DNA of 64,000 nt. It comes from Paragordius varius (lineage: Eukaryota > Animalia > Nematomorpha). Made by a program: the position numbers and the translations under genes. The stretch is from assembly GCA_964247055.1 (NCBI GenBank), contig OZ176053.1:1922001-1986000 (forward strand). Reading direction: 5' to 3'. Shown piece after piece: positions 9,221-61,340 of this stretch (position 1 is the first letter of the stretch; each line of letters starts with the position of its first letter). The notes under the pieces are model-generated. The model had not been told where the DNA came from and ran no database searches. It saw nothing but the letters and a program-made list of their open reading frames with translations.

Positions 9221-10295
9221 TGCTAACATTTAATAACAATGCAAATAAAATGCTAAATTTATCTTTTCGTAACCAGCAAAAAATTGATTCTCGAAAATAT
9301 CTAAAAATAAATAATTAAATATTACTCTGGACAAAATTTTCAAGTTTCACATAAATTAATAAACGTACGAGGTCCATAAAATCATGTAAAGAGTTTATGT
9401 CAACATAAATTTTCTTCAAATGCAATCATGATCAATTAAAAATACTAATATGTAATATTGTATAAACATCCTCCCATTATATTCGCAAATGGACCCCCAG
9501 CAAAATGAGTAGTGTGTTAAAATAATAGAGAGTGTTTTGAGAACGAATTATGTCATCAACTTAAAATTCTTAGTTACCGGTCTCAATATATAAAAAAATA
9601 ATAAGATACAGCATGAGTTTAAAAACTTCAATAAATGGATATTGTTTTGATTGTTCATCTTTTTGTGCCTTATTTTATAAATTTTGGATGAAAATGATAA
9701 AATAATTTTCGTAAAATTGGAAGTGGCAAAAAATTTAACATTCATAAGTAAAAAAGTGTTTTTTATTACCGAGTACACTTGACTTAAGGAACTTGCTCAA
9801 CTTCCTACGCTTGGCATATCAAGTGCGGCATTTTTCTCACCCCACCTATTGTTTTGTTTTTTATATATAGTTTATAGTAGATTTTATTGATATTTTTTAG
9901 TTTAGAGCATTTTGCTTTTACCAAAAAATTTATTTAAAAAAGCGCAAATTTTGCCGTCGGAGAAGAAAAGTGTAAATAACTTTTTTAAATTAACTCGCAA
10001 AGGCCAAATTACAAAATTACCATGAAAATTTTTATACATTTTTCCATCAGCATATATAAATTACACCCAGAAAAAGATGGTCAAAACGATTAACAGATGA
10101 TACTTATCTTAGAATCTCTAATCTGATCAATTTATCCTCAGACAGATCAGCATGTCCATGAAGTCCAGCAAAATGTTGAATATTAACTACGCTGTCATTC
10201 ATTCATTCTTGATTTCGGGCGCGTTTTATATTGCAATCTACAAGCGCTCATCACAAAATTGGGGGATGTAAAAAGCTTCTAATAGATCTCACTAA

Positions 10296-40400: not shown

Positions 40401-43400
40401 CTATCACCTTACCGAAAGCCATGTATTTATTTTTTCCCACTAATGTCACCTTGTGTCTGTAAAGACTTTTTTCTTCCAAAAATTTTAATTTTGACTTAAT
40501 AAACTTTTTTGTGTTATTAGATCAATCCCATATTCGATCTCATATCAACAGGTCTTCGATCAATCAATGAAGTAAGTATATATATATATATGAATAAACC
40601 ATTTTTCAACCAAGTTCCATTTGGATGAGAAATGCTGCGTTTGCTTGAAAAAATGTTGCGTTTAATTGATAAAGTGTTGCTTTTGACTAAAAAATGGTAT
40701 ACCCAATTTTTAATCTCTAAATGAAATATTGAAATTAATACTTGACTTATTTGATACTTGTTTAAATCTATCTAATATTTATTTAATATTTATTTTTTCA
40801 TCTTTAGATAAAAAGGTTTTCTATTTTCTAAATTTAGCACGATAGGGAAAAAGCGTTTGAAGATTGTTGTGAATTAATGGATAGCTTAAGGGAAGAGGAA
40901 TTACAAGGCCACTCTTTGCCCATACCACCTGCTTTAATTACCAAGGCATTAGGTACTTTTAACACTTGGATACAACACATTCATTTTAGTCCTTCGATTC
41001 AAATTGGGGTAGTTAGATAGCCCAGGCCTGTTTAAAATTAAATTCATTAAAAAATATGGAAGGAACCGAAACCATGGCAAAATTTTGCACTTATATAACA
41101 TAAATAAACCGAAATATATAAAAAAATTTATTCAAAAATGCTTATTACTTATTTTAAGCTAAAACCGAAAGGTAAATATTTAGTCAACGTGACATGTGTG
41201 CCGTGGTAATATTGAATAAAATACAAAATAAACAGCTTTTTCTATTTCTATCAATGTTAGATACAATTCAAAAAAAAATTAGCTTTAATTTTACCCTTAA
41301 AATTATATGAAGGCGATATTTTGCAAAAAATTTTTAAAATAAAAATGGCGCCGAAGTAGTTTGACATGGAACTTTTTTTTCAAAACAAAATTTTATTTAT
41401 ATATTTTGGCATATTTATATAATTTTTATTAGGATAGAAGCATAAATTTAAATTGGGACCGTTTCTTTCTGTAGTTTTTTTAAAAATCCTAACTCAAATT
41501 TAGTCTGGGGTATTTGAATACCCCAATTTGAATCGAAGTGTTAAAGACATTTCATTTAACCATTTTTACTTTATTGATAATATACCCAAACGGTGTACAA
41601 ATATACAAGGATTTTCGCGTTACAAAGTCTAAAACTTTTATTCTCTGGTTTTTTTAAATAAATTATCTTTTTATACTTGTAGTTGCATTCGAGAATTGTG
41701 GTAATGGTAATTCATTAGAAGAAAATACTACAGGGAAATCAAATTTGACTGTGGCCAACAAAAAACGCTTATATAAATGTGTTTGGCAAGAATTGTATAC
41801 TTTAATCATGGTTCATTATGAAAATTATAGCAGTAAGAGTAATTCCAATTCTACCAACAAGATCATTGCGGACCTTTTTGAAAAACTACGCAATCATTTG
41901 TTTGAATTGGTCGGCTCTACTGAAACGTTTGATTCGATTTGCGGCATTAAAAGTGTTTTTGATAACTCAAACACTGTAAATGCCACCAATGAGAAAAATG
42001 GGAAAAGAGCTGAAGATTTGAATAACAATGCAGATGGAAATAGGTTTTTAACATTTGTAGATTAATGTTTGCTATTTTTAACATTTGTAGTTTTTATTTA
42101 AGTTTTTAATTTTAAGTATACCAGGATGTTGAACTATGAAAACGTACATTAATCCGAAACATTAACTTTTATGCCACAAAATAAATTGTAGGCTATTTTC
42201 TTTATTCCAAATAAAATAAATTATTAATTATACATTGATTGTGTAAATTAATAATTTTTATACTTATAAACCGTGGTTTCGCTTGCATCACTGGTATGTA
42301 ATATTCTTTTTACAGGCGAATACTATGTGTGCAAATATTTTCTCGCCTTACTATATACCATTTACAATTCAAATTCACCCTTGAAGAATTCAAATTCATC
42401 CTTCAACAATTCAAATTCACCCTCGAACAATTCAAATTCACCCTAAAAATAAATTATGAAATTTCGGTCTAATATAACTCATCATAATAATTAAATATAT
42501 TTTTATGGCAAAGTTTATTTTGTCAGTATTATTTGATTAAATACAAACTTTCTTTTTTAAAAATATAAAAAAATATAGGTAATATTTAATTTAAAAATAC
42601 ACATAATTTATTTTAGGGTGATTTTGAATTGTTCGAAGGTGAATTTGAATTGTTCAAGGGTGAATTTGAATTGTTTAAGGGTGAACTTGAATTGTTTAGG
42701 GGCGAATTTGAAATGTAAATGGTATATTATATTCAATATTACATTTAAATATATATATTCATATTTTTAGCATTTCACCTTTGGCCACAATCATTATACC
42801 TCAATTTGGTAAATTTAATACTTTTTTACAAATTTTATATATATTTTTAATGAAAAAATCAAATTAAATTATTTATTAACCACTTCTTTTTTTTAAAGAT
42901 GAACCACCAATTAATCTGGGGGAATTAATGCAGCGAATAACTCAAAAAGAAGAAAGTGAAAAACGACACAGACCCTCTCTCGATTCGCTTATGGTGAACG
43001 CCATTGAAAATAAGGTGGAACTTTATCCACACATTAAGGACAAAACTAATCCTTTTAACAAGTTTGTGTTACTTTTTTTTATGAATTAATATTTTTTTGG
43101 CTTTACAAAATATTTTGATGTTTATTTATTCAATCTGGCTTTCTTTGTTGGGTTATAAATGTTTGGTTGAAATGTATTTTTTGATTTGGGGTTTATTTGT
43201 TTAATTTTTTAGTAGAATGTTTTATGATACAAACAACTGCGTTTTTAATAATAAATGTGAAACAGCAAAAGGTTATGACTTGTTCGATAGGTGGTTCTAT
43301 GAAATTTGAATCTTAAATTATTTGAAATAAGATTAAAATGGGAGGTTTTTTAATTTAATTACAATATTACAATTTTTGTGTATTTATACCTTAATAACAT

Positions 43401-43484
43401 AATACAAACCAGTTTAAAAATATTTATTTTCATTCTATTTTTTTTTAATTTAGGGACATGACCAAAGAAATACTCACAAATTAA
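37410..43484 (+). CDS. INTS13: Integrator complex subunit 13 / asunder; exons 37410-37712, 37735-37944, 37974-38280, 38863-39254, 39750-39965, 40521-40571, 40838-40952, 41683-42043, 42771-42808, 42899-43061, 43454-43484 (last three less certain)
   Basis: STTISGIPMKEEQNTSGTSINYDVEIIH, FKVSPVEPHSRPSSCLTNF, EGPGGKITDYRI, YWPIVYS and WQELYTLI match recalled INTS13/ASUN motifs in order; junctions are in phase. Confidence 0.92.
37713..37734 (+). other. 22-nt GT-AG intron (INTS13 intron 1)
   Basis: GTAAACATTTTTAATATTTTAG. Read-through stops at 37745; removal opens a 70-codon frame that leads into conserved INTS13 sequence. Confidence 0.8.
37945..37973 (+). other. 29-nt GT-AG intron (INTS13 intron 2)
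   Basis: GTTGATTTTATTTTTAAATAAAATTTTAG; removal gives LYLIQ-RHFKLCSTTISGIPMKEEQ (cf. LVQQHFDLASTTITNIPMKEEQ). Confidence 0.85.
38302..38571 (-). CDS. GEMIN7: Gem-associated protein 7 (SMN complex, Sm-like fold), intronless, nested in INTS13 intron 3
   Basis: EQKACFKLREKFLNAL...ANYFYVENLETAIGTLNNAIVRANDI parallels recalled Gemin7 (EQRARAALRERYLRSL...NFYVSQLQTPIGVQAEALLRCSDI). ATG at 38571, with an in-frame stop shortly upstream. Confidence 0.88.
   Translation of the reverse strand: MENSDDTAEQKACFKLREKFLNALNFMKNSNVNIKFVENIEHKAKFVVCDTNANYFYVENLETAIGTLNNAIVRANDIKYIRFYKNSIE
40073..40241. mobile_element. hAT MITE, 169 bp
   Basis: TIR CAGGGATGTCCAAC / GTTGGACACCCCTG; flanks TTTTATAT and CTCTATAT match at 6 of 8 positions (decayed TSD). 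Confidence 0.75.
40963..41540 (+). mobile_element. piggyBac-like MITE, 578 bp
   Basis: TTAA on both flanks; 13-bp TIR CACTT(G/C)GAT(A/T)CAA plus subterminal TTCGATTCAAATTGGGGTA with asymmetric spacing at the two ends. Confidence 0.8.
42358..42722. mobile_element. MITE-A (longest copy)
   Basis: Intact TIRs, TATA flanks, 4 left and about 5 right units. Confidence 0.88.
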
Positions 43485-43624
43485 AGAACCCAAAATGTGT
43501 ACAATAGAACGTAGATTCTATTCTTATTTATATTACGTGTGATATAGAATAAATTAAATATTACGTGTTCTATAGAGCCTTAAATAAAACGAAATCTTTC
43601 AATTGTGTAAAATTTTCATTGCCT

Positions 43625-45861
43625 ATGAATATTTTATCTCTACACTCTCCGTTCGTTTTTAATGAACGTTCTAACCTTGTCCCAGAAACTTACATAATTA
43701 AAGTCCAGGGTCAAGAATTTATAATTCCTATAAATCCAATCACATATCCCTTGCTTGATGTTATTCGTTGTTTGGATAAACGTTGCCTTACCCCAACACA
43801 TTATGAGTTAGAGTTAGATGGATGGCTAAATATTAGCCTAGATTCATTTATTCCTGTTTATGATTATATGGAAATTGGTATTATTTTGAATTTAAAAGTT
43901 TTTTAACCCATGGGTTAAATTAATTGATTGATTGATTGAATGTTCTGATAGTAGATCCGTTAAAATTAATCTTTTTGGTGCTAAAAACAATGTATACCAT
44001 CATTGTTGTTTTTATGATTGAGTATACTTTGGAATATTATATTTATATAAGTATTAGACATTAAAATGAAATTATCATAGTGAACTATTTAATAAATGTG
44101 GTAAATTAAAATAATTTATAAGTTTCATAGCTTGATTATAAAGGCGTTGAATAGATATAAATTTGGATCAATATTGTTATAATATAAACTGTTTCAAGAA
44201 ATTAAATCATATCAACACTGCATTTCTCTATATATTTGACGAATGCGATCATCTCAGTAAAACTAATGCTTGTTAAAAAAAACCACACCAAAAATAAAAA
44301 AAATAAGTTATTGATTTTTCCGAGTAATTATTTAAGTCACGGGTGCCGCATGGCCTTGATTCGAAGAGTTACGAAATAATTACAAATTTAATTTAAAATA
44401 TATGCTCTTATCATATCAGCAAAATATCATTTGAATCAGACAATTTTTTTGAAAAGATCTTTAAAAATGGCAGTGAACTAAATATTGGATTCCATTTTAA
44501 AAGGGCTAAAAAATTTGTTACTTTTGGAGCCCATCCAAATTTGTAAAAATATTGTTTTCCTTTATGTGTAGTTTATAATCTGTTTTAATGATATTTTTGG
44601 AATGAAGCATTTAGCTTTGAAGATTTAATATGATGTGCGGCGCCATTTTATGATATGGAACTAAAAGTCCTTTCTTAAATCACTCGTGAGGGTCAAACTC
44701 AAAAGCACTATAATCCTGATACTTATTCCTATCAGAATATAAATATTTTATCAGGAAATTTGTGTACACTGTGTAAGGGACAGTTATTTTTGATAAAATT
44801 TTATCAAATATTTTAAAATATGTCACAATTGTATCAAAAAAATTGATAGTTTCTTCATGAAAAAGTTTGTTTGAAATTGTGGCAAAGACATTTGCATCTA
44901 TTTATTTAGATATTAAGCAGACGCTGATGACTGATGGTTTAAACAAAATTGGGCATGTAGACGGCATATTGTTTTTTTCCCATAAAATATTCACAGGATG
45001 GTTTTGAACGTTAGAAGGAAAAATCGGTTTGGATATTGTATTTGTATCTAAGAAGTTTTCTCCTTTGATAGTATATAATTTCGGAGCGTTAAATATACCA
45101 TTATAACAAAGCAAAAACAAAATTATTGTTAGATTCCACAAGCTTTATTATCACACGTAATTTTTATAACAGGCTTTGGAAAAATGGTTTAGGCTCCAAC
45201 CCTATTCTGCCAATAAAAATTTGATTTTAGCACAATAGTATTATTTTAGGTCAATATATTCAAGATAATTAAATTATTTTTAATAAAGAAACTTATAAAA
45301 TAAGAGCGAAAAATGGCTAATCTGATGGCTTAAGAAAAAGAAATGAATTGCTTTATAAATTATCTTTTTTTCTTACGCATAAATAGGTTATTTTTCTTGT
45401 TCAAGCGAAAAATTGTTTGACATCCTTAACATTGCTACCTTTCTACCACTCAATGAGCTCAAGCAAATGGTCATAAATCGAATTGCTAAAGGTATAATAT
45501 AATTGTTCTTTTATTTTATGAACCTAAATTCCAAAAAGCCCTCGTTTATTGTTGCACTTGTAAAATGGCATTCATTACTTTACAAATTTTAGACCTAATA
45601 AACAAATTTAAAAAATTATTTTTTTCATAGATTTTATATTTTTGACGGAAACACCCGAATTTTACCGGCTTTCACCCAATGCCCTGATAGATTTATTAGC
45701 TGCTGACTCGCTCGTGGTATTTTTTGAGCTTGATGTTTTTTCGGCTGCACTTCGATGGTCTCTAGTCAATTGTCAAAGTGCAACAACGTTTCCCGAAATC
45801 TTTGATGAAAGTTTATATATTTAATATCTTTATGGAGAAATTTGACATTGAATAAATAATC

Positions 45862-45913
<52 letters not shown>

Positions 45914-48900
45914 AGTGATACTCAAACACCGGCCCTAAAAGTCTTTTTATGGCCCTGAATTAATTATTTAATTTTTTGTATACTTATATTGACTATAAAT
46001 ATATCTGCAAATGTGTCAAACAGCTACGTAATTTTTATCGGTATTATATAGTCTACAACCCAGAGACAAGATAAATATTTTTTGCGGCCATTTAAAATGT
46101 TTTTGGTGAATAGCACTCCTTTAATTATATGTTCAAAAATTTAATTAATAAATTTGTGGATCAATCTTATAACAAATGCCTTATATATATATATATATAT
46201 ACCATTTATAGTTCAAATTTACCCTTGAACAATTCATATTCACCCTAAAAATAAATTATGTGTTTTCGAACTAATATAACTCATTATTAATGTGAAATAT
46301 ATCTTTATGGCATACTTTATTATTTTTTCAGTATTATTTTAATTTAAAACAAAATTTTATTTTTAAAAATATATGAAAATATTGGTAATTTTAATCTTAA
46401 AAAACAAATAATTTATTTGAGGATGACTTTTTGAATTGCTTAAGGGTGAATTTGAATTGTAAATGGTATATATATATATATATATATATATTTTACAATA
46501 GTCAGATGGTTACACATGCCATCCCAAATGTTACAACAATGTTATGATATAACAGATGAGGTTATGCACGATGCATCGTTTAAGGCGGATTTGTTGGAAA
46601 TTATTTGGTAATTAGAGAGACTTTATGCGAACAAAATTAAATATATATATATATATATATTATATAAAGTAGGCATACACAAATGGCTTCGCGGGTCGCA
46701 TATATAAAACTCGAACTTTCGAAAAATATATGGGCATTAATAATAATTTTATTAGATTTCAAACATAAAACTGTAAAAAATACGAACATAATATTACTAC
46801 TCTAATGTTTTCGCTAGCTTTTTGCCAAAATTTGGGAAGACATGGTCAGAAATTTAGTTTAAGATAAATCATAAAATTTTTATTCCATCATATTTTGCTA
46901 AATGATCAACTTTGTAAATAATTATCCAAAAATTTCGCGCAGGCTGCCCAAAATATTTTGCAGGCCGCATGTTGGACACTCTTCTGAGTAAATTATATTA
47001 CCCAATTTAAATGGATATATACACATTTATGTTAATTGTCTGCTTATGATCAACGCCTATTCCTAAGTAATCAGACCGGTATTTTTAACGGATGCAAAAA
47101 CAACCTAAGTAACTCTTTTTTAATTTTATATCTAACCAAAATAGGGTTAGACAACAATATGAACTAGGAGTATCTTGGGCAACTGGCAAAGATTTTGAAA
47201 CGCCACCGCGCTCCTATATCGGCATAGATTCATCACCTAATGTATTTTTACATTTCTTTCAATAAATATTATTATTCTTATTATCATTAAGGTATAAAAA
47301 TTAAAATAATATAAAATAAATGTATAATAAAATGTTTGATTTTCGCGTACTATATAATGCCTTTTTAACTCGATTACAAGCAAACAAAATGCATAAAGGA
47401 TTGACATTTTTATCTAATTTCCAATCTTTTTCTATTTATTTGGTTTTAGTTTAGTATTAATTATTTTATTAACAATAGGTGTTAATTTGAATACCTGGTG
47501 ATATATTAAAAATATTCTAATTTTAAATATATAATAAAAAATAATGAAAATTAGATATATGAAACTTTACGGCGAAAATTGGCAACGTTATTGTTGGATC
47601 GGGAAAATATAATATCATACGATAATAAACCTAATAACAAGTATTTCACTAAATTAATCAAATATTACTTGATGAAAATTCATAAAAAAGTTAACTAAAA
47701 ATTAATAATTAAAAAATGCTATGTGAAACCCTTAGTCAACAGAAAAGCCAAACTATTTTGCGCCTGTCGTCACTTATCAGTAAGACATAAATATTTGACT
47801 TGGGGTTTACTACCTAATTTATGTTGAATCCCACTTGCATTTTGGCAGATATCAGTCGAAATCAAATATAATATACAAATTTTATCTCGTCACTTTAGTT
47901 TTTAATTTAATTTTAGGTTCATTTTAATGAACTACATAAAATTTACCCAACTCATAGCGATATCATAAAATATTCTTAGATCGGATTATGCAATAATTGA
48001 TTCTACCCCGTCATCACCAAACGTTATATTTGACAAAGGCTCTAAAGCAATATTGGTAAATATTTTTCAAAAAATAAGTAAAAAATTGATTTTTTCAATA
48101 ATGCTCAAATAATGTAAATAGCCTCGAAAAATTCCTGCAAAACGTAATGCAATTACCAACAAGTTAGGGGAGAAAACATCCCCTAAACCCCCGAAAAAAT
48201 GTGAGGATTGCCGTAAAATACTTGAAAAGTGTGTATGCAAAAAGGAAGTTAAAGCCAAGTCCAAATCACCCGCGAAAGATGTGAAAACTAAAGTTAATAA
48301 TTCTTGGATTTGTTTAAATCATAAATTATTGTTTTATGTTTTTTTGAAAAATGGTAATTAAAATGGCATAATATAAATGTTTTTTTAAGAAAAAAGTTGA
48401 AGATAAACAGAAAGAAGTGGCCAAACCAGTAAAAGCTGAACCTAAGCCTACTCCCAAGAAAAAAATAGAAACTGCTAACAAAACAGCAAATAAAATGTAT
48501 ATCTTAGTTTAATTTAAATTTGGAAAGAATTGCGTTTTGAAATTATATAATCCAAAGTTTTTAGTTTTATAGTGACATTTGGAATATAAAATTTGTTTAT
48601 AAACTTAGACCTCCTAAAACAAATGAAAGGCCGATCACAGTCCAAGTGCCAGTTGTGCCAAAGTATTGAGATATATCTGCTTGTTTTTGGCTAAAATCAA
48701 TTTTTTATTTAACTAGCATTCTGCCCATAACCTCCTGAAATAACGTATTTTATTTGCATTTTCAGAATTGTAGAACCACCGAAAGTAACCAAAGAAACTG
48801 TGAAAATCGAAATCGAACCGGATCATCCAAAAGCCGAAGATCGAATGGTAGCAAGGCGTTTTTCAAGTATATTTACTGTTTATTATATGCATTCTTGACC

Positions 48901-51059
48901 TAGACTGTAACCGTTATCAAAAATCAGACGAATATTAAACATCTATATACAGTATGGATAAGTAGACATTGCTAGTTTTTTATTAATTATTGTCAGATGA
49001 TAAATAAAGTGAAAGAAATATATTTGAGCCAATAATTCTTTTTGCTGCATATGCTCTCTGACAATATTTAATAAAAAACTCATTTACACATCATACTATA
49101 TATTTTATATTATATATTAATTTAAATTTGGTATCAAAATATTAAAACAAATTAAATATTGAATGTGAGCTAATGATATTTGATTAAATTATTCAAAAAA
49201 TATTAATAAACACATGAATATCATAGATATACCGAAAAATGAGGCACCATCAAAACATTCGCAATTACTTTCTCCGCCCATGAAAGAACGGCGTAAATCT
49301 AGTGTCAAGTATAATTTTTTTTTTAAAAATCAAATTATATTTGAAATATCGAAAAAATAATGCAATAACATAAATTATAGATTCTAGCAAATTATCCCTA
49401 AGTGACATTTATAATAAATATAAAAGACGTCTATTAAAATAATAGTAAAATATTGTCTTCCATAATTTATTTGGTCCGATATAATTTTAACCGTTTTTTT
49501 GAATTTCGAAATTTAGTTTACACAATCCCATTTATCTTTATGTAATAGACCAATCCAACCCCTAGAACCGGACAAAACCTTAGCTGATACGCCACCAATG
49601 GTGGAAATGCATATCGATGCGCCTTTATTAGACATTCTAACCGAACAAATTATTTGTCAAACCAAATTGACGGATCTCTATCTCATTGGTTATATCATAT
49701 TATATGAACTTTTTTATCTAATCTATAAATTTTAGACCTAGAATAATAATAAAGATACCCAAATTCAAAAATTTTTCTTCATTTTAAAATATTTAGTCAG
49801 CTAAGTCAATTCTTTTTCATTACAAACAGGCTCTAATCGGCTAAAATGGTCAGATCCGATTACGGATACTCCTTGCATTAATTTATGTTGGAAACAATTT
49901 TATAGTCAAGGTTGGACACCTATCAAGGGTATGCCAGAGGCCAGAAGTAATCACACAGTTTGTGCTATGTATGGTGAAATTTATGTAATTGGTGGCAAGA
50001 ATACAACTAATCAGTAAACATTTTTTTTCTATGTTGTCTCAAAATTTATTAAACCACATATTTAGATCTTTGGCTTAAAATACATCTTTTTTATGGCAGA
50101 ATTGTGAATGATACTATTGCATATACGGCAATAACTGATACCTGGAGGCCAATTGAACCCATGATAACTCCACGGTTTGGATGTGCAGCAGCCGAATATC
50201 TAAGACAATTATTTGTGATTGGTGGATTTGTTAGCAATCACGATGGTACTGCATTAACATTGACCAACTCTATCGAAGTGTATGATCCGTTTGAAAAAAT
50301 GTATATCATTCTACATTTTCATAGAGTTTATGTCAAGGAATAAGGATAGAAATATAACTCTTTTAGATATCTCTACTGTATGAATAATAATATAAACTTC
50401 TTCGCTGTATATTTGTTTATTTTTTCCACCCTTTAGTTGGAAACCGGCTAATCCCTTTAACAAACCCATTTGTTATGCTGGACTATGTGAATCGAATGGT
50501 TCATTTTATTTGATTGGGGGAGCTACTGGGACCGATCCTCAGGCCCTAGCGCCTTGCAATGAGATCTACCGTTATAACTATGAATATGATGTATGGCAAC
50601 CACTTACACAGCTCCGTATACCACGTTATAAATTTGGTGTACTAAGTATAGGTAATAATTATGAGATGGGTAGGTTTATATTAACATAAAATTTGATTAG
50701 CATATTTGACTGCTTTGTCGGCGAAATTTTTGCAAGTCCTAATATATAAAAACGTAGGTGCACTCATTTCCATAGGCACATTGTTAGAAATAAACGAAAA
50801 ATTTTTATTGTAGTACCATTTATATAGAGGTTAACTTTTTGGAATTTCTATATGTACCAGATAAAATTGTAAAAAATTAATATTATGATGCCGCTTTTTA
50901 GGCAAATACATCAATATAGTCAATGGAATCGGACTCAATAATGAGCCCATAAAATCTATTGAGAAATGGAATACGGCGCTGGAAATTTGGGACAGAGAAA
51001 CTGCTTGTACCGAGGCGTGTGAAGTCAATTCCATATGTGCCTCTTTAAGGTATATTTAG
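43625..51059 (+). CDS. Kelch-like protein: BTB (43625-43877, 45387-45491), BACK (45631-45810, 46502-46607), Pro/Lys-rich linker exons (47145-49688), five Kelch repeats (49549-49688, 49830-50013, 50100-50300, 50437-50651, 50902-51049/51059)
   Basis: BACK motif TPEFYRLSPNALIDLLAADSLVVFFELDVFSAALRW; Kelch motifs IYVIGG...W...MITPRFGCAA, LFVIGG...IEVYDP, FYLIGG...VWQ...IPRYKFG. Continuity across 47242-47979 needs a small exon (candidate 47555-47586); this could instead be two genes. Confidence 0.75.
46202..46466. mobile_element. MITE-A inside a (TA)n microsatellite
   Basis: Intact TIRs with (TA)n on both sides. Confidence 0.85.
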
Positions 51060-51653
51060 ATGTTTTTAGAGCGAGTGTGGAAATTTCATTATGTATGCAT
51101 CGGGTATTTTACAGCATATATTTATTTACATATGATTAAAATTTATTAACCTTCTTACATTTTTGTCCATTAAGGCTTTAAGAAACTTTTTATATTGTCT
51201 TACATAATACTTGATTTCTAATTTTTACCTAACAAACATAGGATAATATGAAATTTAGAGTCTCATTTCCTTTTAATAAAGAGTAAAAAGAATATCAATT
51301 CTTAAAAGATTAAACAATTTATAGGTTGAGTCTAACGAGGTAAAAGATTTTACATTTATGCGGCTAACTATGTCACCTCTTCATTGTATTGACTAGGTAA
51401 CCTTGAAAACAACAAAGGGTTTGGATATTTTGCAAAAACAATTTTATTTCATTAACATAAATTATTATTCGGCATCCATTATTATTAATTAACCCGTTTT
51501 TCGAAAAATGCCCATAAAGATATTTAGCTTATAACTTATTGGTAGAAGCCTTTTTTCTCGAATCTTTGAAACACGGTTTGGTATATTTACCAATTAAAGG
51601 TTTATAAAATATTATTAAATATACTAATAAAATCATAATTTTATTGCATATAG

Positions 51654-52724
51654 AGGCCAAATCAAAGCCGAAGTATGGGATATTCCTTGGCCAGAGCTGA
51701 AACTTAACATTGAAAAGTTAAAGTTGGATGACAAAATTTTGGGTCAAGGCCATTTTGGGATGGTTAAGAAGGGCAGCTACAAATGGGACAATAAAGAAGA
51801 GTTGATGGCAGTCAAAATGTTAAAAGCCGCAGGAGGTTATATATAGATATATATCTATATATATATATATATATATATATTTATAAAAATGGAAAATGCT
51901 GGCTTTGTGATCTGGTACAGGAAAACCGGTAAACCCATTCAAATCCAAACTTCGAAAAAATATAATCATTAATGAATGCCCCGACAATAGCGTCGCCCTT
52001 TTTTTCAAATAGGCCCCCGGTTCGGTCCCACCCCGTGTGAAAAACGGGTTTTTTTGAAAACAAAAGTCCACAAAAATCGTGTCTCTGAGACAATTTTCCG
52101 GAGAACGTGTTGGACCATTCAATTTCAAATATGATTTTTGTTTACTTATTTTCGATTGCGCCGAACATGGTCGAGTCACTTTTTTGATTTAGGCCCTCTT
52201 TTTACCCGCTACCCCCGTAAAATGCCATTTTTTTCAAAAAACAAAGTCCACAAAAATGATTTTTTAAATCGATTTTTCGCCCTAGGTATGAGATCGTAAA
52301 AATTCAATATGGATTCCACGTATTCCCTGTTAAAAGGCAAAAATTTTAGCCAGGCGTTTCTTTGATGATAGCTGCTGGGTAAGGAGCTACCCGCTAAAAA
52401 CTGATTTTTCATTTAACTTTGTCATCTGTTTCCGGAAAACCGGTGAATAAGGATTTTTCGTATTACCCGTTACTTTAATGATAGCTGCTGAGTAAGGAGT
52501 TTCTATCATACGTATAAATATTTATTTAAATCTATTTTTCCCTCAAGTAAATAATCAATGTATGAATGCACCGTATTATAATTCCTATGAGATCATAGCT
52601 ATTAAAAAATGTTTCGAAATAATCCACATATGTGGATCATTTTATTGTCCCTTTTTTCAAATAACCCCCCCCAGTAGTCCGAAGTACTTCCTCGGGCTGC
52701 GTAGCAGCACGAGATTTACGCTAG

Positions 52725-52755
<31 letters not shown>

Positions 52756-55576
52756 TAATCTAACAAAAAATTTTGCGCAATGTTTTGTACCATGTAATAT
52801 ATAAATGTATATCTTAGCTGGGTCTAATCCACTTGAAGAACAAAAAATGTTTATTGACAGTGTACGTGAACTGAATATTATGTCCAAAATTGGTGTTCAT
52901 AACAACATTGTCAACACGATTGGAGCATTAATTAATAAAGGTAGGTAAGGCATTTCTTTGATATATATATATTCCACTTATATATCAATTTCAACCTTAA
53001 ATTCAAATTCACCCTTGAACAATTTAAATTTACCCTAAAAAGAAATTATGTATTTTCGGACTAATATAACTTATCTTTAATATGAACCATTTTTTTATGG
53101 TACATTCTATTATTTTTTTCAGTATTATCTTAATATTAAAGGAAATTTTATTTTCCAAAAATATAAAAAATTATATGAAGTTTTTATTCGAAAACACATG
53201 ATTTATTTTAGGATTTAGTATTCATGGATCTGTTCAAGGGGTGAATTTGGGCTGTAAATGATATTTCAGGAATTTCAACGATTGATAACACAAAATATAT
53301 TTTCATATATATTTAAATATATACAAATTAGGTATGCTTTATATTTGCACCGAATTTTGTCCAAACGGTGATCTCAAGGGTTTCCTGAACAAAGCCAAAA
53401 ATTTTGATGGAGAATGTTCCGTTATTGATATGATTGGATTTGCGTGGGGTATTGCGCTTGGTATGGCTCATTTAGCTGATCATGGCGTAAGCAATATTAG
53501 AGATAGCTTTTACTTATTTTCATAAATATTAGGCGTCTCATTTAATAAAATTAATGATTATATAACACCTTTCTTTAGATTATTCACCGAGATTTGGCCG
53601 CTCGTAACATATTGTTGGCAGAAGGTAATTTACCGAAAGTTTGTGATTTTGGACTAGCTAAAGACGAGGGGATATACCAAAGGAAAGTCATGGTAAATAT
53701 TTGTTGGGATTTGTAGTGTTCAGTATATAAATGTATTTGATAAAAAAATGACTTTACAGTTATCTAAAAAATTGCATTTAGCTAATTTAATTTTTTTATA
53801 TATTTTTCTTTAGACTGGCCGTGAGGATTACCCAAATACTCCACAATTTAATAACATCCTTGTCAGCTCTGGGCAGGCGAGTGTTGAAGCTTTGACAAGT
53901 CCTAATATAATTTAAGTCCTTTCCCTTTAGTAAAAAAAGGAACAAAATAGCTCTCAACTGTAATAAAAATATATTTATTGACCTACAATTTTGTGTGAAA
54001 GCCGCATATTTTAAAAATATTATTTTTTATCATTACTATTATATGGCTTAATTTACCACAATATTACTTAATTACACATAATTCTGCTGCATGTTTACCT
54101 TTTGTCTATAATTTTATTGATAAAAATTTGTATTTACGCATAAAAGGTATAGTTAATCATTTACGGTAAAAATTGAATTTTACGGACAAAACGTAATGAT
54201 ATAAAGACAAATATTTTTTTCTAAACGACAACCATACTTTTATTATAATCTATTTAATACCTCATGTTTTAAACTGTAAAGTATAAAATAGAGATGTATA
54301 TTGGTAACACAATCAGTATGTGTTTTGCAATTGTAAAAAGGATAAATTAAGGCGTAAAAAAATATTGTTGTCTTTTGAAAAAAAAGGTGTCTTTAAATTT
54401 TTACGTTTTATCCGTATAAAATCTAATTTTTACTGTATCTACATGATTGGTAAAAAAGGTACTCCGTAACCTACCTATCAAATGGTTAGCCCTAGAGTGT
54501 TTAACTCACGTGTGCTTTAGCCAAAAATCTGATGTTTGGGCTTTTGGAGTCACTTTGTGGGAAATTGTAACGCTCGGAGATGGTCCTTATCCCGGTTGGA
54601 ATAATATGGAAGCCAAGGCTAAAATACAAGAGGGCTATCGAATGCCCAAACCTGCTAAATGTTTGGATGAACTGTAATCATTACTTATAAATAAAACTGA
54701 AATGAATAGGACACAGATTTTACCTTTTTTCGGTTTTAACGAATCTTCCCCAAATCAATTTTAGATTTGTCTATTGAAAGTTAATTCAGCCAATTGGTTA
54801 ATTTTTGTTTGATTTATAAATGAACATATGGACCATTCACGCATAAATTTGGTTTTTGTACGTGATCATACAATCATGTATATGTCATTAGCAGTAAGGT
54901 AAGAGCTTTAGCACATTTGTCTGTACACTTATTTTTACATCTCTATCTCTCTGCCTAAACTGGTTCAAATGGACTACAATAAAAAACGAATTATTGATTG
55001 ATAGAAATTTTAGAGGGAAATACAGCGTATATACATGTAAAAATTCCACGTATGATTCAGTAATTTTTATTTTACGCTCAATTTCGCTCCCTCTCATGTG
55101 AAAACTGGTATATTAATCCATTTTTTTAGCTTCCTAAAAATATTATATCATTTTCGTTTAAGTCATGGGCGCGAGTAGATACTAGCTCTTAAGGAGCAAT
55201 AAATTGCCGTAAATTGAAAAGTTTTTTTACATTTAGCAAATTAACACGGCTTAAACAACGATAGCGAAATAAATTTATGCTAAACGCTTCACTTTTACTT
55301 AAATATATTCTTATGAATCAAAAATCTGCATCTTGATAATCGGGATATTCCGTTTATGTCTTCTACTGTTTATTTTTTCATTTTTGATAAGCTTACATGC
55401 TATTACATTGGTTGTAATTTATTTTAAATTATTTGGTTTGTCATAATTTAAGATATGATATGATGGTGGATTGTTGGAAAGCAAGCCCGGATGAACGTCC
55501 GACTTTTGATGAATTAGCGATAAGATTGGAGGAGTTGTATAAAAAGGAACTAGAGGTTGATATTACCAAATTATAA
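51654..55576 (+). CDS. Receptor-type (Tie/FGFR/Ret-like) tyrosine kinase catalytic domain; exons 51654-51835, 52818-52940, 53332-53486, 53579-53692, (53814-53876), 54459-54673, 55453-55576; 5' end unresolved
   Basis: [66 protein letters not shown] and CW...P.ERPTF are all present and in phase. Confidence 0.92.
51854..52724 (+). mobile_element. Non-autonomous Helitron, same family, inside the first kinase intron
   Basis: Same TC 5' end, same internal unit and the same GCTGCGTAGCAGC...CTAG|T 3' end as 10296-11375. Confidence 0.88.
52973..53261. mobile_element. MITE-A, decayed
   Basis: TTCAAATTCACCCTTGAACAATT core and internal sequence match the other copies; ends eroded. Confidence 0.7.
54164..54435. 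mobile_element. Tc1/mariner-type MITE-B (TA|C(A/G)GTAAAAA...TTTTTACTG|TA); other copies 24218-24462, 30949-about 31226, about 31771-32036
   Basis: Long TIR containing TACGGACAAAACGTAA..ATAAAGACAAATATTTT; TA flanks; four copies recognised by eye. Confidence 0.78.
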
Positions 55577-56245
55577 TATTTTACAATATAAGCCCTTTAT
55601 TTATAAAAATATTTTACCATGTTTATTGATATACGTAGATAACTAAAACGTCGAAAAAGCCTGTTAAGATAACTGTTAAAGTCCCCTTAAATCAGACTGA
55701 TAATACCAAGATGAGTTTTTGGCGTAAATCAACGTTTGGCATGAAAGCAAAATGATATAGAATTTATATAACTGCCCACCATATATATATATATATATAT
55801 ATATTATATTATATTTAGTTACCCAACATTTATATATAATTGTACAATAAAGTCTTGACACAGGGTTTCATATTAACATTTATGAATACAACTACAAATA
55901 GATTTTGTAATGTGAAAAATGGAAAATTATTTTTTGAATAACAAATTAAAGTTAGGAGCAAAAAATATGGATTTAAAAAATGGCTTAGTTGTCTTTTTAT
56001 AATTCCATGTTGCAGGTAAAATGAATCTTTTTGTTCCATATAAAATTTATCCTAAAAACCCTATTATAATGCAATTTAGCCAAATTTTTAGTTTAATTTA
56101 TATGAAAATGCGCTAAGACAAATTTGCAGTTTTCTCGTACTCTAGGTCTAAAAATGCCAAATGAGTTAACCGAGTCAACCTTATTGTTCAGATTTAATTC
56201 AAAAAAATTTGCATTGATATGGGGAGTAAAAGTCTGCTTTGTAAT

Positions 56246-56723
56246 CACATTTGGATACAACACATTCATTTCAGTCCTTCGATTCAAATTTGGGTTGTTG
56301 GATACCCCAGACCTGTTTAAAATTAAATACATCGCACTTAAATAACATTGATAAACCGAAATATAAAAAAATTCGTACAAAGTACTTGATCTTACTTTTA
56401 AGATAAAACCCAATGTGTTTAGTCATTATGACATAAACCACTTTTTCGTAATGATAGATGTGATCAAAAAATAAAGCTTTAATTTTAGCTCAACATTAAA
56501 TAAACCCGATATTTTGCAGAAAGGCTGAAAATAAAAATAGCGGCAAAGTATTTTGATATGGAACTTTTTTCAAAAAAAATTTATTTAGATATTTTGGCTT
56601 ATTTATAAGATTTTTAAATGAAAGAACAAAAATTTGAATTTAGACCGTTTTTTCCGGTTGTTATTAAAAAATATAAACTTAAATATAGTCTGTGATATAT
56701 AGATACCCCAATTAATCGACGTG
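56246..56723 (+). mobile_element. Diverged third copy of the piggyBac-like MITE
   Basis: TTGGATACAACACATTCATTTCAGTCCTTCGATTCAAATT at the left end, GATACCCCAATT..AATCGACGTG at the right end. Confidence 0.72.
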
Positions 56724-56967: not shown

Positions 56968-58057
56968 TGGATATAACACTTTCATTTCAGTCCTCTGTCA
57001 AATTGGGTTGGGGCCCTTAAGCCTGTTTAAAATCAAATATAAAAATATAGAAATCTCGCAAAAGTTTGCACTTATATAATATTGATGCACTAAATATAAA
57101 AAAAGAATTACTTAAAAAGATATTACTTATTTAATAGCTAAACCTCAAGGTAAAAATTTCACATTGTTTGCATTTGCTAATTAAAAAAATATTGCAAAAT
57201 AAACAACTCATCTGTTTATGTCAATGTTCGTGAATAAAATAAAAAATTAGGTTTAATTTTAGCATAAGAATCAAATAAGGACATTTGTAAATTAGTAAAC
57301 TAAAAATGGTGTCGTAGTAGTTTAACACTTCGATTCAAATTGGGGTATCTAAACCAGACTAAATTTAAATTAATATTTTTAAAAAACTACTGAAAGAAAC
57401 GGTCCCAATTTAAATTTATGCTTCTATCCTGATAAATATTATATAAATATGCCAAAATATCTTGATAAAATTTTGTTAAAAAAAAGCTCCATCTCAAACT
57501 ACTTTGACGCCATTTTTATTTTACAAAATTTTTGCAAAATATCGTCTTCATTTAATTTTAAGGGTAAAACAAAAGCTATTATATAAATTACATCTAACAT
57601 TGATAGAAATAGAAAAAGCGGTTTAGTTTGTATAATTTTTCAATTTTACAATTTGACACATGTCACGTTGACGAAGTTTTTACCTTTCGGTTTTAGCTTA
57701 AAATAAGTAATATCAAGTATTTTTGATTAAAATTTTTTATATATTTCGGTTTATTAATGTTAGATAAGTGCAAAATTTTGCCATGGTTCCGATTCCTTCT
57801 ATATTTTTAAGGAATTTAATTTTAAACAGGCCTGGGGTATCCAACTACCCCAATATGAATCGAAGGACTAAAATGAGTGTGTTGTATCCAAGTGTTAATA
57901 TGAAACCTTTTTTGCTAGATTTTATTCCAATATTTTGGCTTATTCGTATAATTTTTTTAGGATATAAAAATATATGAATCCGTTTCTTCTAGTAGTTTTT
58001 AAAAATATCCACTTAATTATAGTCTTTGGTATTTAAAATCTCAATTTAAATGAAGTT
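56968..58057 (+). mobile_element. Older copy of the same piggyBac-like MITE, split by the 57326-57894 insertion
   Basis: 56968-57325 matches the left part up to AAAATGG.G.CG.AGTAGTTT; 57899-58057 resumes with the remainder of the consensus. Confidence 0.7.
57326..57894 (-). mobile_element. piggyBac-like MITE, inverted copy of 40963-41540
   Basis: Reverse-complement match along the whole length; TTAA at 57322-57325 and 57895-57898. Confidence 0.82.
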
Positions 58058-59597: not shown

Positions 59598-61340
59598 ATG
59601 CTAAATGCATTACCCTATGATATCTATCTCAAAATTTTTGGCTATTTAAATGGTAAATCTGTCATTAATCTAAGCTCAACATGCAATTTTATACGCCAAA
59701 ATTTATATGATATAACCGTCACTCATCCCAAGTTTTGGTATAACCTGTGTCTTTCGGAAATCGATGATCAATACCTTATAGAATTTAAACAAGGAAAACA
59801 ATCATCTTACAAGGAAGATAATGATTATTGGGAAAAAGTATACCGTTTATATCTTTGCCAAGAAAATTTTAAGTTGCTGAAACTTAATTCCGAGGTATAT
59901 GTGAAATCAGAAATTAAGGAATCTGAAAATGTAATAGTCGATGCTATCACTAAATGTTTGATTCGAGATAAATATATTATAACCGGTCACAAATCAGGAT
60001 GCATTTGTCAATGGAACGTTGATGGAAACAAAAATATTACGATCCTTATAAAACACACAAGCGGGGAGATTCGGGATTTAATATTTTTAAACCCTGTCAT
60101 GGAAAATAATGGCCATACATATCCTCCTATCATTGTTTCAATTGCCCAAGATAATATAATAAAATTTTGTTCAACCGTCTTTTCACCCGATACTTGTGCT
60201 GATAATTTTTTATCTTTAACTATGAAGCATCCACCAGGGATACATGAATTATCTTTGCTATCGTCTAGGAGTGAAACTCACCTCCCTTTACCATTCATGA
60301 CTAATTTGTGCCCTGTAGGTCATTTGAATGTACCTTATTTTGCTGTTGGATTCCGGAGTGGATTCTTGAGTTTATGGGAATTTCGTTATCCGCCTCTAAT
60401 AATAGATGACGACAATATTGATAGGAATGTTGACGATGAGGGCAGAAGTAAAAAATTTGCCACAAATACCCCTAAAGCCTTTATGCGAAGCGTTTTACGG
60501 GCTCATGATTCAGAAATTTTGCATATGGCTTATTGGGATGGATTTTTAGCCACGGCATCCATTAGGCTGGAATTAAAAATTTGGAAAATTTCTCTTTCGT
60601 CTCCGTTTGATATGACTACTAACAGTTCTCCAACACCGTCAGGGGGATCAATTAAACCGAGATTTAGGTGTTATCATACACTCACGTTTGGTTTTCACTC
60701 CTATCAACAATCCTTACCGTTTGGTGGTTCTTTCTATCTTGCCCCGTGGAATTTTGCCTTTAAATATAACCATATTATAGCAGCCAATCTTAAATTGATT
60801 GCTGTAGTTGGTATAAATGATAACGATGATGGGAAAAATGTCACCAAAAATGAAATTGTCCAATCTAACAATATAACATCTGTGACAAGTAGCTCGACGA
60901 CAGGGGGTCAAACACCAGCCATAGAAACGGAGATATGTTATCGCCAATTTCGAACGGCCTCTAAACTTCCCATGGGCCTAGAAAATGAATCCATTCAAAC
61001 CCTACTGTGCAAGGGATCTCTCCTATGCTTAGCAACTGGAAATTCCTGGATTTTGGTTTATCATATTGGCCATACCCATAGGGGGGCTGCCACTACTGCA
61101 TCACTTAAAGAATTGCTTTTTATGCAAGATGGTCCAGTTTTTATGAGGCATCTTGATATGCACAGTGATGCATGTGAATTTCGTAAAAATGATATACCCT
61201 CCTCTTTGTTAACCAAATACAGGGCTACTCAAATTACGGGTTTGGATCTTTCGTTTGAAACGACACGTATCATATTAACGGTCACGACGGAATTGGGTGT
61301 GGTTGTATACAAATTTGAGAAGCGATTTTGCGCTTTTTAA
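59598..61340 (+). CDS. F-box and WD40-repeat protein, intronless, 580 aa
   Basis: N-terminal F-box LPYDIYLKIFGYLNGKSVINLSSTCN; WD-like segments YIITGHKSGCICQWN, FAVGFRSGFLSLWE, RAHDSEILHMAYWDGFLATASIRLELKIWK. Confidence 0.85.
   Translation: MLNALPYDIYLKIFGYLNGKSVINLSSTCNFIRQNLYDITVTHPKFWYNLCLSEIDDQYLIEFKQGKQSSYKEDNDYWEKVYRLYLCQENFKLLKLNSEVYVKSEIKESENVIVDAITKCLIRDKYIITGHKSGCICQWNVDGNKNITILIKHTSGEIRDLIFLNPVMENNGHTYPPIIVSIAQDNIIKFCSTVFSPDTCADNFLSLTMKHPPGIHELSLLSSRSETHLPLPFMTNLCPVGHLNVPYFAVGFRSGFLSLWEFRYPPLIIDDDNIDRNVDDEGRSKKFATNTPKAFMRSVLRAHDSEILHMAYWDGFLATASIRLELKIWKISLSSPFDMTTNSSPTPSGGSIKPRFRCYHTLTFGFHSYQQSLPFGGSFYLAPWNFAFKYNHIIAANLKLIAVVGINDNDDGKNVTKNEIVQSNNITSVTSSSTTGGQTPAIETEICYRQFRTASKLPMGLENESIQTLLCKGSLLCLATGNSWILVYHIGHTHRGAATTASLKELLFMQDGPVFMRHLDMHSDACEFRKNDIPSSLLTKYRATQITGLDLSFETTRIILTVTTELGVVVYKFEKRFCAF

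Follow-up and report, generated by a model that had tools for sequence, protein, structure and literature searches.

We asked whether a Kelch gene and a tyrosine kinase that lie end to end in a horsehair worm genome are two genes or one. The question arises in a 64,000-nucleotide (nt) stretch of Paragordius varius DNA (GCA_964247055.1, OZ176053.1 1,922,001-1,986,000, forward strand), which we call the window and whose own numbering is used throughout. The window is AT-rich (G+C content of 22-34% per 2 kb), and its plus strand carries two exon sets between 43.6 and 55.6 kb, first BACK/Kelch and then tyrosine kinase. The BACK and Kelch exons span 45.6-51.05 kb; a gap of 604 nt separates them from six intact PK_Tyr exons at 51654-55576. 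An initial annotation of this DNA had left two alternatives side by side, a KLHL-kinase chimera and a stand-alone kinase. Judging from the gene structure and from its conservation between two genera, we consider it likely that the locus encodes a Kelch-kinase fusion transcript. The chimera is favoured because the two parts stay adjacent in a second horsehair worm, Gordionus, and because donor, acceptor and phase are conserved there.

The counterpart in Gordionus was compared with the window exon by exon. An exhaustive search of 1.8 billion representative proteins with the kinase C-lobe exon (K5 below) returned 15,521 matches, only one of which was close: a protein of 124 residues, 64% identical, which is a gene-model fragment that NCBI names 'tyrosine-protein kinase receptor Tie-1-like [Gordionus sp. 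m RMFG-2023]'. In word searches, the first kinase exon (K1) gave no match, K5 gave distant fragments only and the 124-residue Gordionus protein had no second close relative. The locus used for comparison (L001) is a 21.8-kb piece of Gordionus sp. m RMFG-2023 (OX940787.2 of GCA_954871325.2). The G+C content of the Gordionus montsenyensis genome, 26.9%, is similar to that of the window (10.1101/2023.06.26.546503). Exons were defined in the window by enumeration of splice sites and phases together with Pfam matches, and two donors were refined against Gordionus (that of Ke3 to 50651 and that of K4 to 53692). Eleven exons, five from the Kelch part (Ke0-Ke4) followed by six from the kinase (K1-K6), are collinear between the two loci, and every intron phase is equal:

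49549..49688, plus strand: Ke0, first clear Kelch-repeat exon; L001 4478-4611, 50% identical
49830..50013, plus strand: Ke1, Kelch exon (Pfam Kelch_1, E 6.9e-6); L001 5153-5333, 53% identical
50100..50300, plus strand: Ke2, Kelch exon (Pfam Kelch_1, E 6.2e-9); L001 5398-5592, 52% identical
50437..50651, plus strand: Ke3, Kelch exon (Pfam Kelch_1); L001 6121-6336, 56% identical
50902..51049, plus strand: Ke4, last Kelch exon with the closing strand, donor AAG/GTATAT; L001 8566-8716, 29% identical
51654..51835, plus strand: K1, pre-kinase segment (WDIPW), glycine-rich loop GQGHFG and AVK lysine; L001 9236-9417, 72% identical from the first residue
52818..52940, plus strand: K2, alpha-C exon (..VRELNIM..; Pfam); L001 about 9706-9828, identity not computed (frameshifts)
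53332..53486, plus strand: K3, hinge exon (Pfam), acceptor inferred from phase only; L001 9888-10042, 75% identical from 53334 on
53579..53692, plus strand: K4, exon with the catalytic loop HRDLAARN and DFG (Pfam, E 2.2e-10); L001 11433-11546, 71% identical
54459..54673, plus strand: K5, P+1 loop (PIKW) and C-lobe exon (Pfam, E 1.6e-25); L001 11605-11819, 61% identical
55453..55576, plus strand: K6, end of the kinase domain (CW..RP), short tail and stop codon (Pfam); L001 12279-12390, 32% identical

The Ke3 donor was reset to TAG/gtaata at 50651, as L001 has ATTG/gtaata at the matching codon, and the K4 donor ATG/gtaaat was likewise selected through the Gordionus comparison. Joined in silico, Ke0 through K6 give 599 codons with no internal stop.

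How do the two exon sets meet? The signals on which the initial annotation had based its chimera were found again in the letters: the last Kelch exon ends in the donor AAG/GTATAT at 51049/51050, in a phase that matches the kinase acceptor, and the kinase part begins at 51654 after the acceptor TAG at 51651-51653. The gap, given there as about 600 nt, is a spacer of 604 nt (51050-51653), and the junction codon formed across it is AG + A, that is Arg. In Gordionus, Ke4 ends at the same codon (CAAAG/GTTTAT versus TTAAG/GTATAT in the window) and K1 starts in the same way (CTAG/AGGGCAA versus ATAG/AGGCCAA), with the split Arg codon AG/A kept. There the junction would connect L001 8716 with 9236, at about 909677 and 909157 on the minus strand of OX940787.2. 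The similarity between the two loci stops and starts exactly at the Ke4 donor and the K1 acceptor. The spacer itself differs in length (519 nt in L001 and 604 nt in the window) and shows no conservation by blastn or tblastx; an Rfam scan over 43000-53288, which takes in the window spacer, found no family. The tails that would be added if Ke4 were read through also differ. In the window an unspliced Ke4 gives RYI and then TAG at 51057-51059, as had been noted initially, and in Gordionus the tail is RFIYIFYTYK*. Moreover, the downstream neighbours of the kinase are different (an F-box/WD open reading frame (ORF) in the window, a malectin gene in Gordionus), while the Kelch-kinase pair stays together.

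We then considered the strength of the Ke4 donor. On a position weight matrix (PWM) built from the 12 other donors of the locus, which is a small matrix, it scores 6.69 bits and falls in the upper third of the locus donors; only 86 GT sites in the 64 kb score at least as high. The chance of such a donor, in the right phase and within the last four codons, is ∼0.5%, a figure that is post hoc and depends on the small PWM. The AATAAA near 51275, which had been listed as counter-evidence, is present at 51275 but carries no weight: there are 177 copies of AATAAA on the same strand of the 64-kb window, and the one in the spacer is therefore uninformative.

The kinase part, in turn, does not look like the start of a gene. 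An in-frame TAA (51628-51630) lies directly upstream of K1, in agreement with the initial annotation, and there is no ATG from this stop to the exon and none before the glycine-rich loop within it. Since K1 thus has an in-frame stop directly upstream and lacks a start codon, and since the Gordionus K1 contains no Met at all, K1 is an internal coding exon in both species. An alternative conserved first exon upstream of the kinase was found neither in the window nor in L001. We rejected an operon or a trans-spliced kinase start, because K1 has no conserved in-frame Met and such a start would yield no kinase; in the literature searched we found no link between Nematomorpha and a spliced leader, which is absence of evidence only. 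A very short intron of 22-29 nt directly before K1 was rejected as well, as the 34 nt upstream of 51654 contain no GT.

What does the part before the junction encode? Three exons between 49.8 and 50.7 kb match Kelch_1 above the Pfam cut-off, and the best natural solved matches of Ke2 and Ke3 in the PDB are IVNS1ABP and KEAP1. By eye we counted five clear Kelch repeats and a closing strand. The closing strand stops exactly at the end of the Ke4 exon, so that the domain boundary coincides with an exon boundary. In this the locus resembles the KLHL adaptors (KEAP1, IVNS1ABP/KLHL39), a BTB-BACK-Kelch family that brings substrates to CUL3, whose propeller also finishes in a closing strand at an exon end, which have BACK and then Kelch on one strand and which supply the best natural solved matches. 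It differs from them in that a kinase probably follows the propeller, that a BTB domain is undetected by sequence, that BACK and Kelch are separated by a K/P/E-rich stretch and that only five clear repeats plus the closing strand were counted, against the six blades of a KLHL propeller.

The part after the junction is a tyrosine kinase. All six kinase exons match PF07714 (PK_Tyr_Ser-Thr) over 51655-55573 and profile positions 5-258 (best E 1.6e-25), and read exon by exon they contain every catalytic motif: the glycine-rich loop, the beta-3 Lys, the alpha-C Glu, HRDLAARN, DFG, PIKW and CW..RP. The kinase had initially been called receptor-type on account of its motifs. The call is partly right: the nearest full-length kinases by exon-wise sums are receptors whose ectodomains are of the fn3, F5/8-C, Ig or torso-like kind (40-56% identical), but the motifs that were quoted for it are not receptor-specific. 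The pattern W-E-I-P...L-G-Q-G-x-F-G is found in Src-family kinases, and Abl, Csk and Syk have HRDLAARN too. For the N-lobe exon K1, SYK is the best solved match (27 bits). Kinases of the Syk/ZAP-70/Shark type carry tandem SH2 domains before the kinase, whereas a scan restricted to the FLVRxS-type SH2 motif found none in any frame of the window; as the nearest full-length relatives are also receptors, we rejected a Syk-like kinase.

Compared with the Tie/Axl/torso/FGFR-like receptor kinases, the window kinase is 40-56% identical exon by exon and shares the motifs including CW..RP. Unlike them, neither hairworm locus has an exon for a signal peptide, an ectodomain or a membrane segment upstream of the kinase, where only the Kelch exons are conserved; the spacer contains no conserved ORF. 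Also unlike the receptors, the window model has only ∼8 residues from the propeller to the W-D-I-P motif, lacks a kinase insert and ends in a very short C-terminal tail. The intron between K1 and K2 (51836-52817) contains an insert of ∼850 nt with a higher G+C content (0.34) and internal direct repeats; tracts of (TA)n flank it at 51837-51890 and 52725-52760. The counterpart intron in Gordionus is just 288 nt long, and the insert is probably a repeat-element insertion.

What could such a gene do? In the reading that we favour, the locus would be one transcription unit in which a KLHL-type Kelch propeller is joined to a tyrosine kinase through a single split Arg codon, and 51050-51653 would be a 604-nt fusion intron. 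The kinase domain would be complete, is predicted to be catalytically competent and of receptor-kinase ancestry, and would lack an ectodomain and a membrane segment; upstream of the propeller there would probably be BACK exons and a charged linker. The likeliest origin is that exons for the intracellular part of a receptor kinase came to lie behind a Kelch gene, the last codons of which became a splice donor. The Kelch propeller, together with a BTB/BACK dimerising module if one is present, would then replace the ligand-binding and dimerising parts of the receptor, and the kinase might be brought to the binding partners of the propeller, be held dimeric for trans-autophosphorylation, or both, by analogy with the receptor-kinase fusions of cancer. 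If CUL3 binding by BTB/BACK has been retained, substrates recruited for ubiquitination could be phosphorylated by the protein itself. A Kelch-only isoform ending in RYI*, produced by intron retention or early polyadenylation, may coexist.

Whether the predicted protein also includes BTB and BACK depends on the exons upstream of Ke0, all of which are on the plus strand:

43625..43877, plus strand: B1, putative first coding exon with ATG at 43625, open frame and donor TTG/gtatta; the place where BTB would sit
45387..45491, plus strand: B2, candidate exon between B1 and BACK with phase-compatible acceptor and donor; no family match
45631..45810, plus strand: B3, BACK-domain exon (Pfam BACK PF07707)
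46506..46607, plus strand: B4, candidate end-of-BACK exon with open frame and donor TTG/gtaatt
48390-48496, plus strand: Kr2, candidate K/P/E-rich linker exon from splice-site and phase enumeration
48766-48866, plus strand: Kr3, candidate K/P/E-rich linker exon from splice-site and phase enumeration
49227-49308, plus strand: Kr4, candidate K/P/E-rich linker exon from splice-site and phase enumeration

The initial annotation had described a BTB-BACK-Kelch-tyrosine kinase. Pfam recovered BACK, Kelch and PK_Tyr, but BTB was undetected both by Pfam and by sequence search of the PDB: B1 gave no Pfam match at E<=1 and no PDB match at E<=10, and its single-sequence AlphaFold2 model (pLDDT, predicted local distance difference test score, of 43.5) was too poor for use. 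The BACK domain matches PF07707 at 45612-45821 with E 2.3e-8, above the gathering score, and B3 weakly matches the BACK regions of KEAP1, gigaxonin and KBTBD2 in the PDB sequence search. Between BACK and Kelch the path is less clear. A direct junction of B4 to Ke0 would read TG+A, a TGA stop, and read-through from B4 gives one codon and then TAA at 46611-46613. The candidate exons Kr2-Kr4 are phase-compatible with one another and with Ke0, and their chain can reach Ke0; they have no Pfam match and are not conserved in the Gordionus locus. The length of ∼1050 residues once estimated for the chimera is uncertain, as it depends on the exons between BACK and Kelch. In KLHL proteins the standard order is BACK and then Kelch on one strand, and it is by this usual order that BACK and Kelch may be taken to share one transcript here. 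Upstream of the Gordionus Kelch exons, at L001 2236-2955, there is a long GAA/AAG-type tract in which three frames are open as E/K/R runs; the K/P/E-rich ORFs of the window (48122-48895) occupy the equivalent position. A wider proposal, which we think slightly less likely than not, is a germline BTB/BACK-Kelch-tyrosine kinase conserved in horsehair worms. Its CUL3-adaptor-type module would stand in for the ectodomain and would either dimerise the kinase without ligand or make it phosphorylate the adaptor's own substrates.

Several observations weigh against a fusion, or against its full extent. The NCBI models of Gordionus leave Kelch and kinase unjoined: an 864-residue model ends just after Ke2 (L001 1-5596), and the kinase model starts inside K3 and goes no further than K5 (L001 10001-11823). 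These models are fragmentary and lack the conserved Ke3, Ke4, K1, K2 and K6, and they are therefore no evidence either way. Both spacers contain short ATG mini-exons with usable phase-2 donors, which are unconserved and mutually unrelated. The Gordionus K2 (L001 9706-9760) has two frameshifts, near L001 9708-9712 and 9752-9756, in a G run and in an AAAGG run, and two stops in the expected frame. Kelch repeats occur in none of the 150 best kinase relatives, so that the architecture is without precedent in that set. The small sequencing runs presumed to be RNA from this species contain none of the words sampled, the runs that do contain them are DNA-like, and the protein collections searched hold no transcript-derived protein. 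Finally, a BTB domain and a splice path from BACK to Kelch are putative.

Could these observations be better explained by two adjacent genes? The Kelch gene would then end at TAG 51057-51059 and be polyadenylated in the spacer, and a kinase-only gene with its own promoter in the spacer would splice to 51654 a first coding exon that is very short and evolves fast (51248-51282 or 51060-51103, for instance), giving a cytoplasmic kinase of ∼310 residues without a targeting domain. Such an arrangement would account for the read-through stop near the Ke4 donor, for the separate NCBI models in Gordionus and for the phase-2 ATG mini-exons, which have donors of 4.7-5.0 bits in the window spacer and other representatives in the Gordionus spacer. 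However, not one of these mini-exons is conserved between the loci, and as little as 519-604 nt would have to accommodate a 3' end, a promoter and a first exon. It would also leave unexplained why the phase-matched Ke4 donor is conserved and why the pair persists although its downstream neighbour has changed, and we regard two genes as unlikely. A further alternative keeps the fusion but takes away BTB/BACK: the BACK gene would end at TAA 46611-46613, and a gene for linker, Kelch and kinase would begin within the K-rich region near 48-49 kb. The stop formed by a direct B4-Ke0 join, the read-through stop one codon after B4, an ATG at 49214 and the phase-compatible K-rich exons upstream of Ke0 all agree with such a start. 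On the other hand, it would separate BACK from Kelch in spite of the standard KLHL order, and the 864-residue NCBI Gordionus model, which includes Ke0-Ke2, reaches well upstream; to us this shortened fusion seems improbable.

The frameshifts in the Gordionus K2 could suggest something else, that the kinase part is the decaying remnant of a receptor kinase that has lost its 5' exons and makes no functional protein. The missing start codon of the kinase and the lack of expression in the sequencing runs listed would be in line with decay. Nevertheless, all six window kinase exons are open, their splice sites are intact and every catalytic motif is kept, and kinase exons K1 and K3-K5 are 61-75% identical between the genera compared to 29-56% for the Kelch exons. 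The Gordionus assembly was made from nanopore reads (bioRxiv 10.1101/2023.06.26.546503), and both frameshifts lie in its G and A runs; they may reflect either homopolymer error of that assembly or decay of that one copy. Altogether we consider a decaying remnant very unlikely.

Finally, we asked whether a Kelch-kinase protein of this kind has a counterpart elsewhere. In the somatic cancer fusions EML4-ALK, TPR-MET and ETV6-NTRK3 an unrelated N-terminal partner is placed just upstream of the kinase domain, and the ectodomain and the membrane segment are lost. The hairworm candidate is like these in that the partner is joined directly before the kinase and ectodomain and membrane segment are gone, and it is unlike them in being germline and conserved in two genera. 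We know of no animal with a BTB/BACK-Kelch-tyrosine kinase architecture, and in the literature searched we found no report of a Kelch-tyrosine kinase in animals. Outside animals, Kelch motifs and a tyrosine-kinase domain are described within one protein in Entamoeba histolytica and in unicellular holozoans (PMC2939887; PMC4342544, figure legend). These proteins belong to other lineages, and as far as their descriptions go (PMC2939887 and the figure legend in PMC4342544), by which alone they were compared, no BACK/KLHL context is reported. If the transcript is confirmed, the locus would extend the domain architectures of animal tyrosine kinases by a new one. It would also mean that a receptor kinase became a cytoplasmic kinase by capture of another gene's exons, and it would provide both a natural counterpart of the oncogenic receptor-kinase fusions and a natural system for studying the physical coupling of a tyrosine kinase to a Kelch propeller that recruits substrates and may be a CUL3 adaptor. 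For the annotation of hairworm genomes there is a warning here, as the public Gordionus models omit five conserved exons at this locus.

A scan of the window for paralogues of the locus found none. Downstream of the kinase, the F-box/WD ORF mentioned above is an intronless reading frame of 580 residues (59598-61340, plus strand) that begins with an F-box (PF12937, E 1.5e-5) at the N-terminus and weakly matches WD/beta-propeller families; the public collection holds no identical product. Between the kinase and this ORF, two further ORFs in opposite orientation, 56093-56413 (minus strand) and 57768-57977 (plus strand), share the peptide NR(S/P)GVSN.PN(L/M)NRRT(E/K)M(N/S)VLYP and appear to be a dispersed repeat in two inverted copies.

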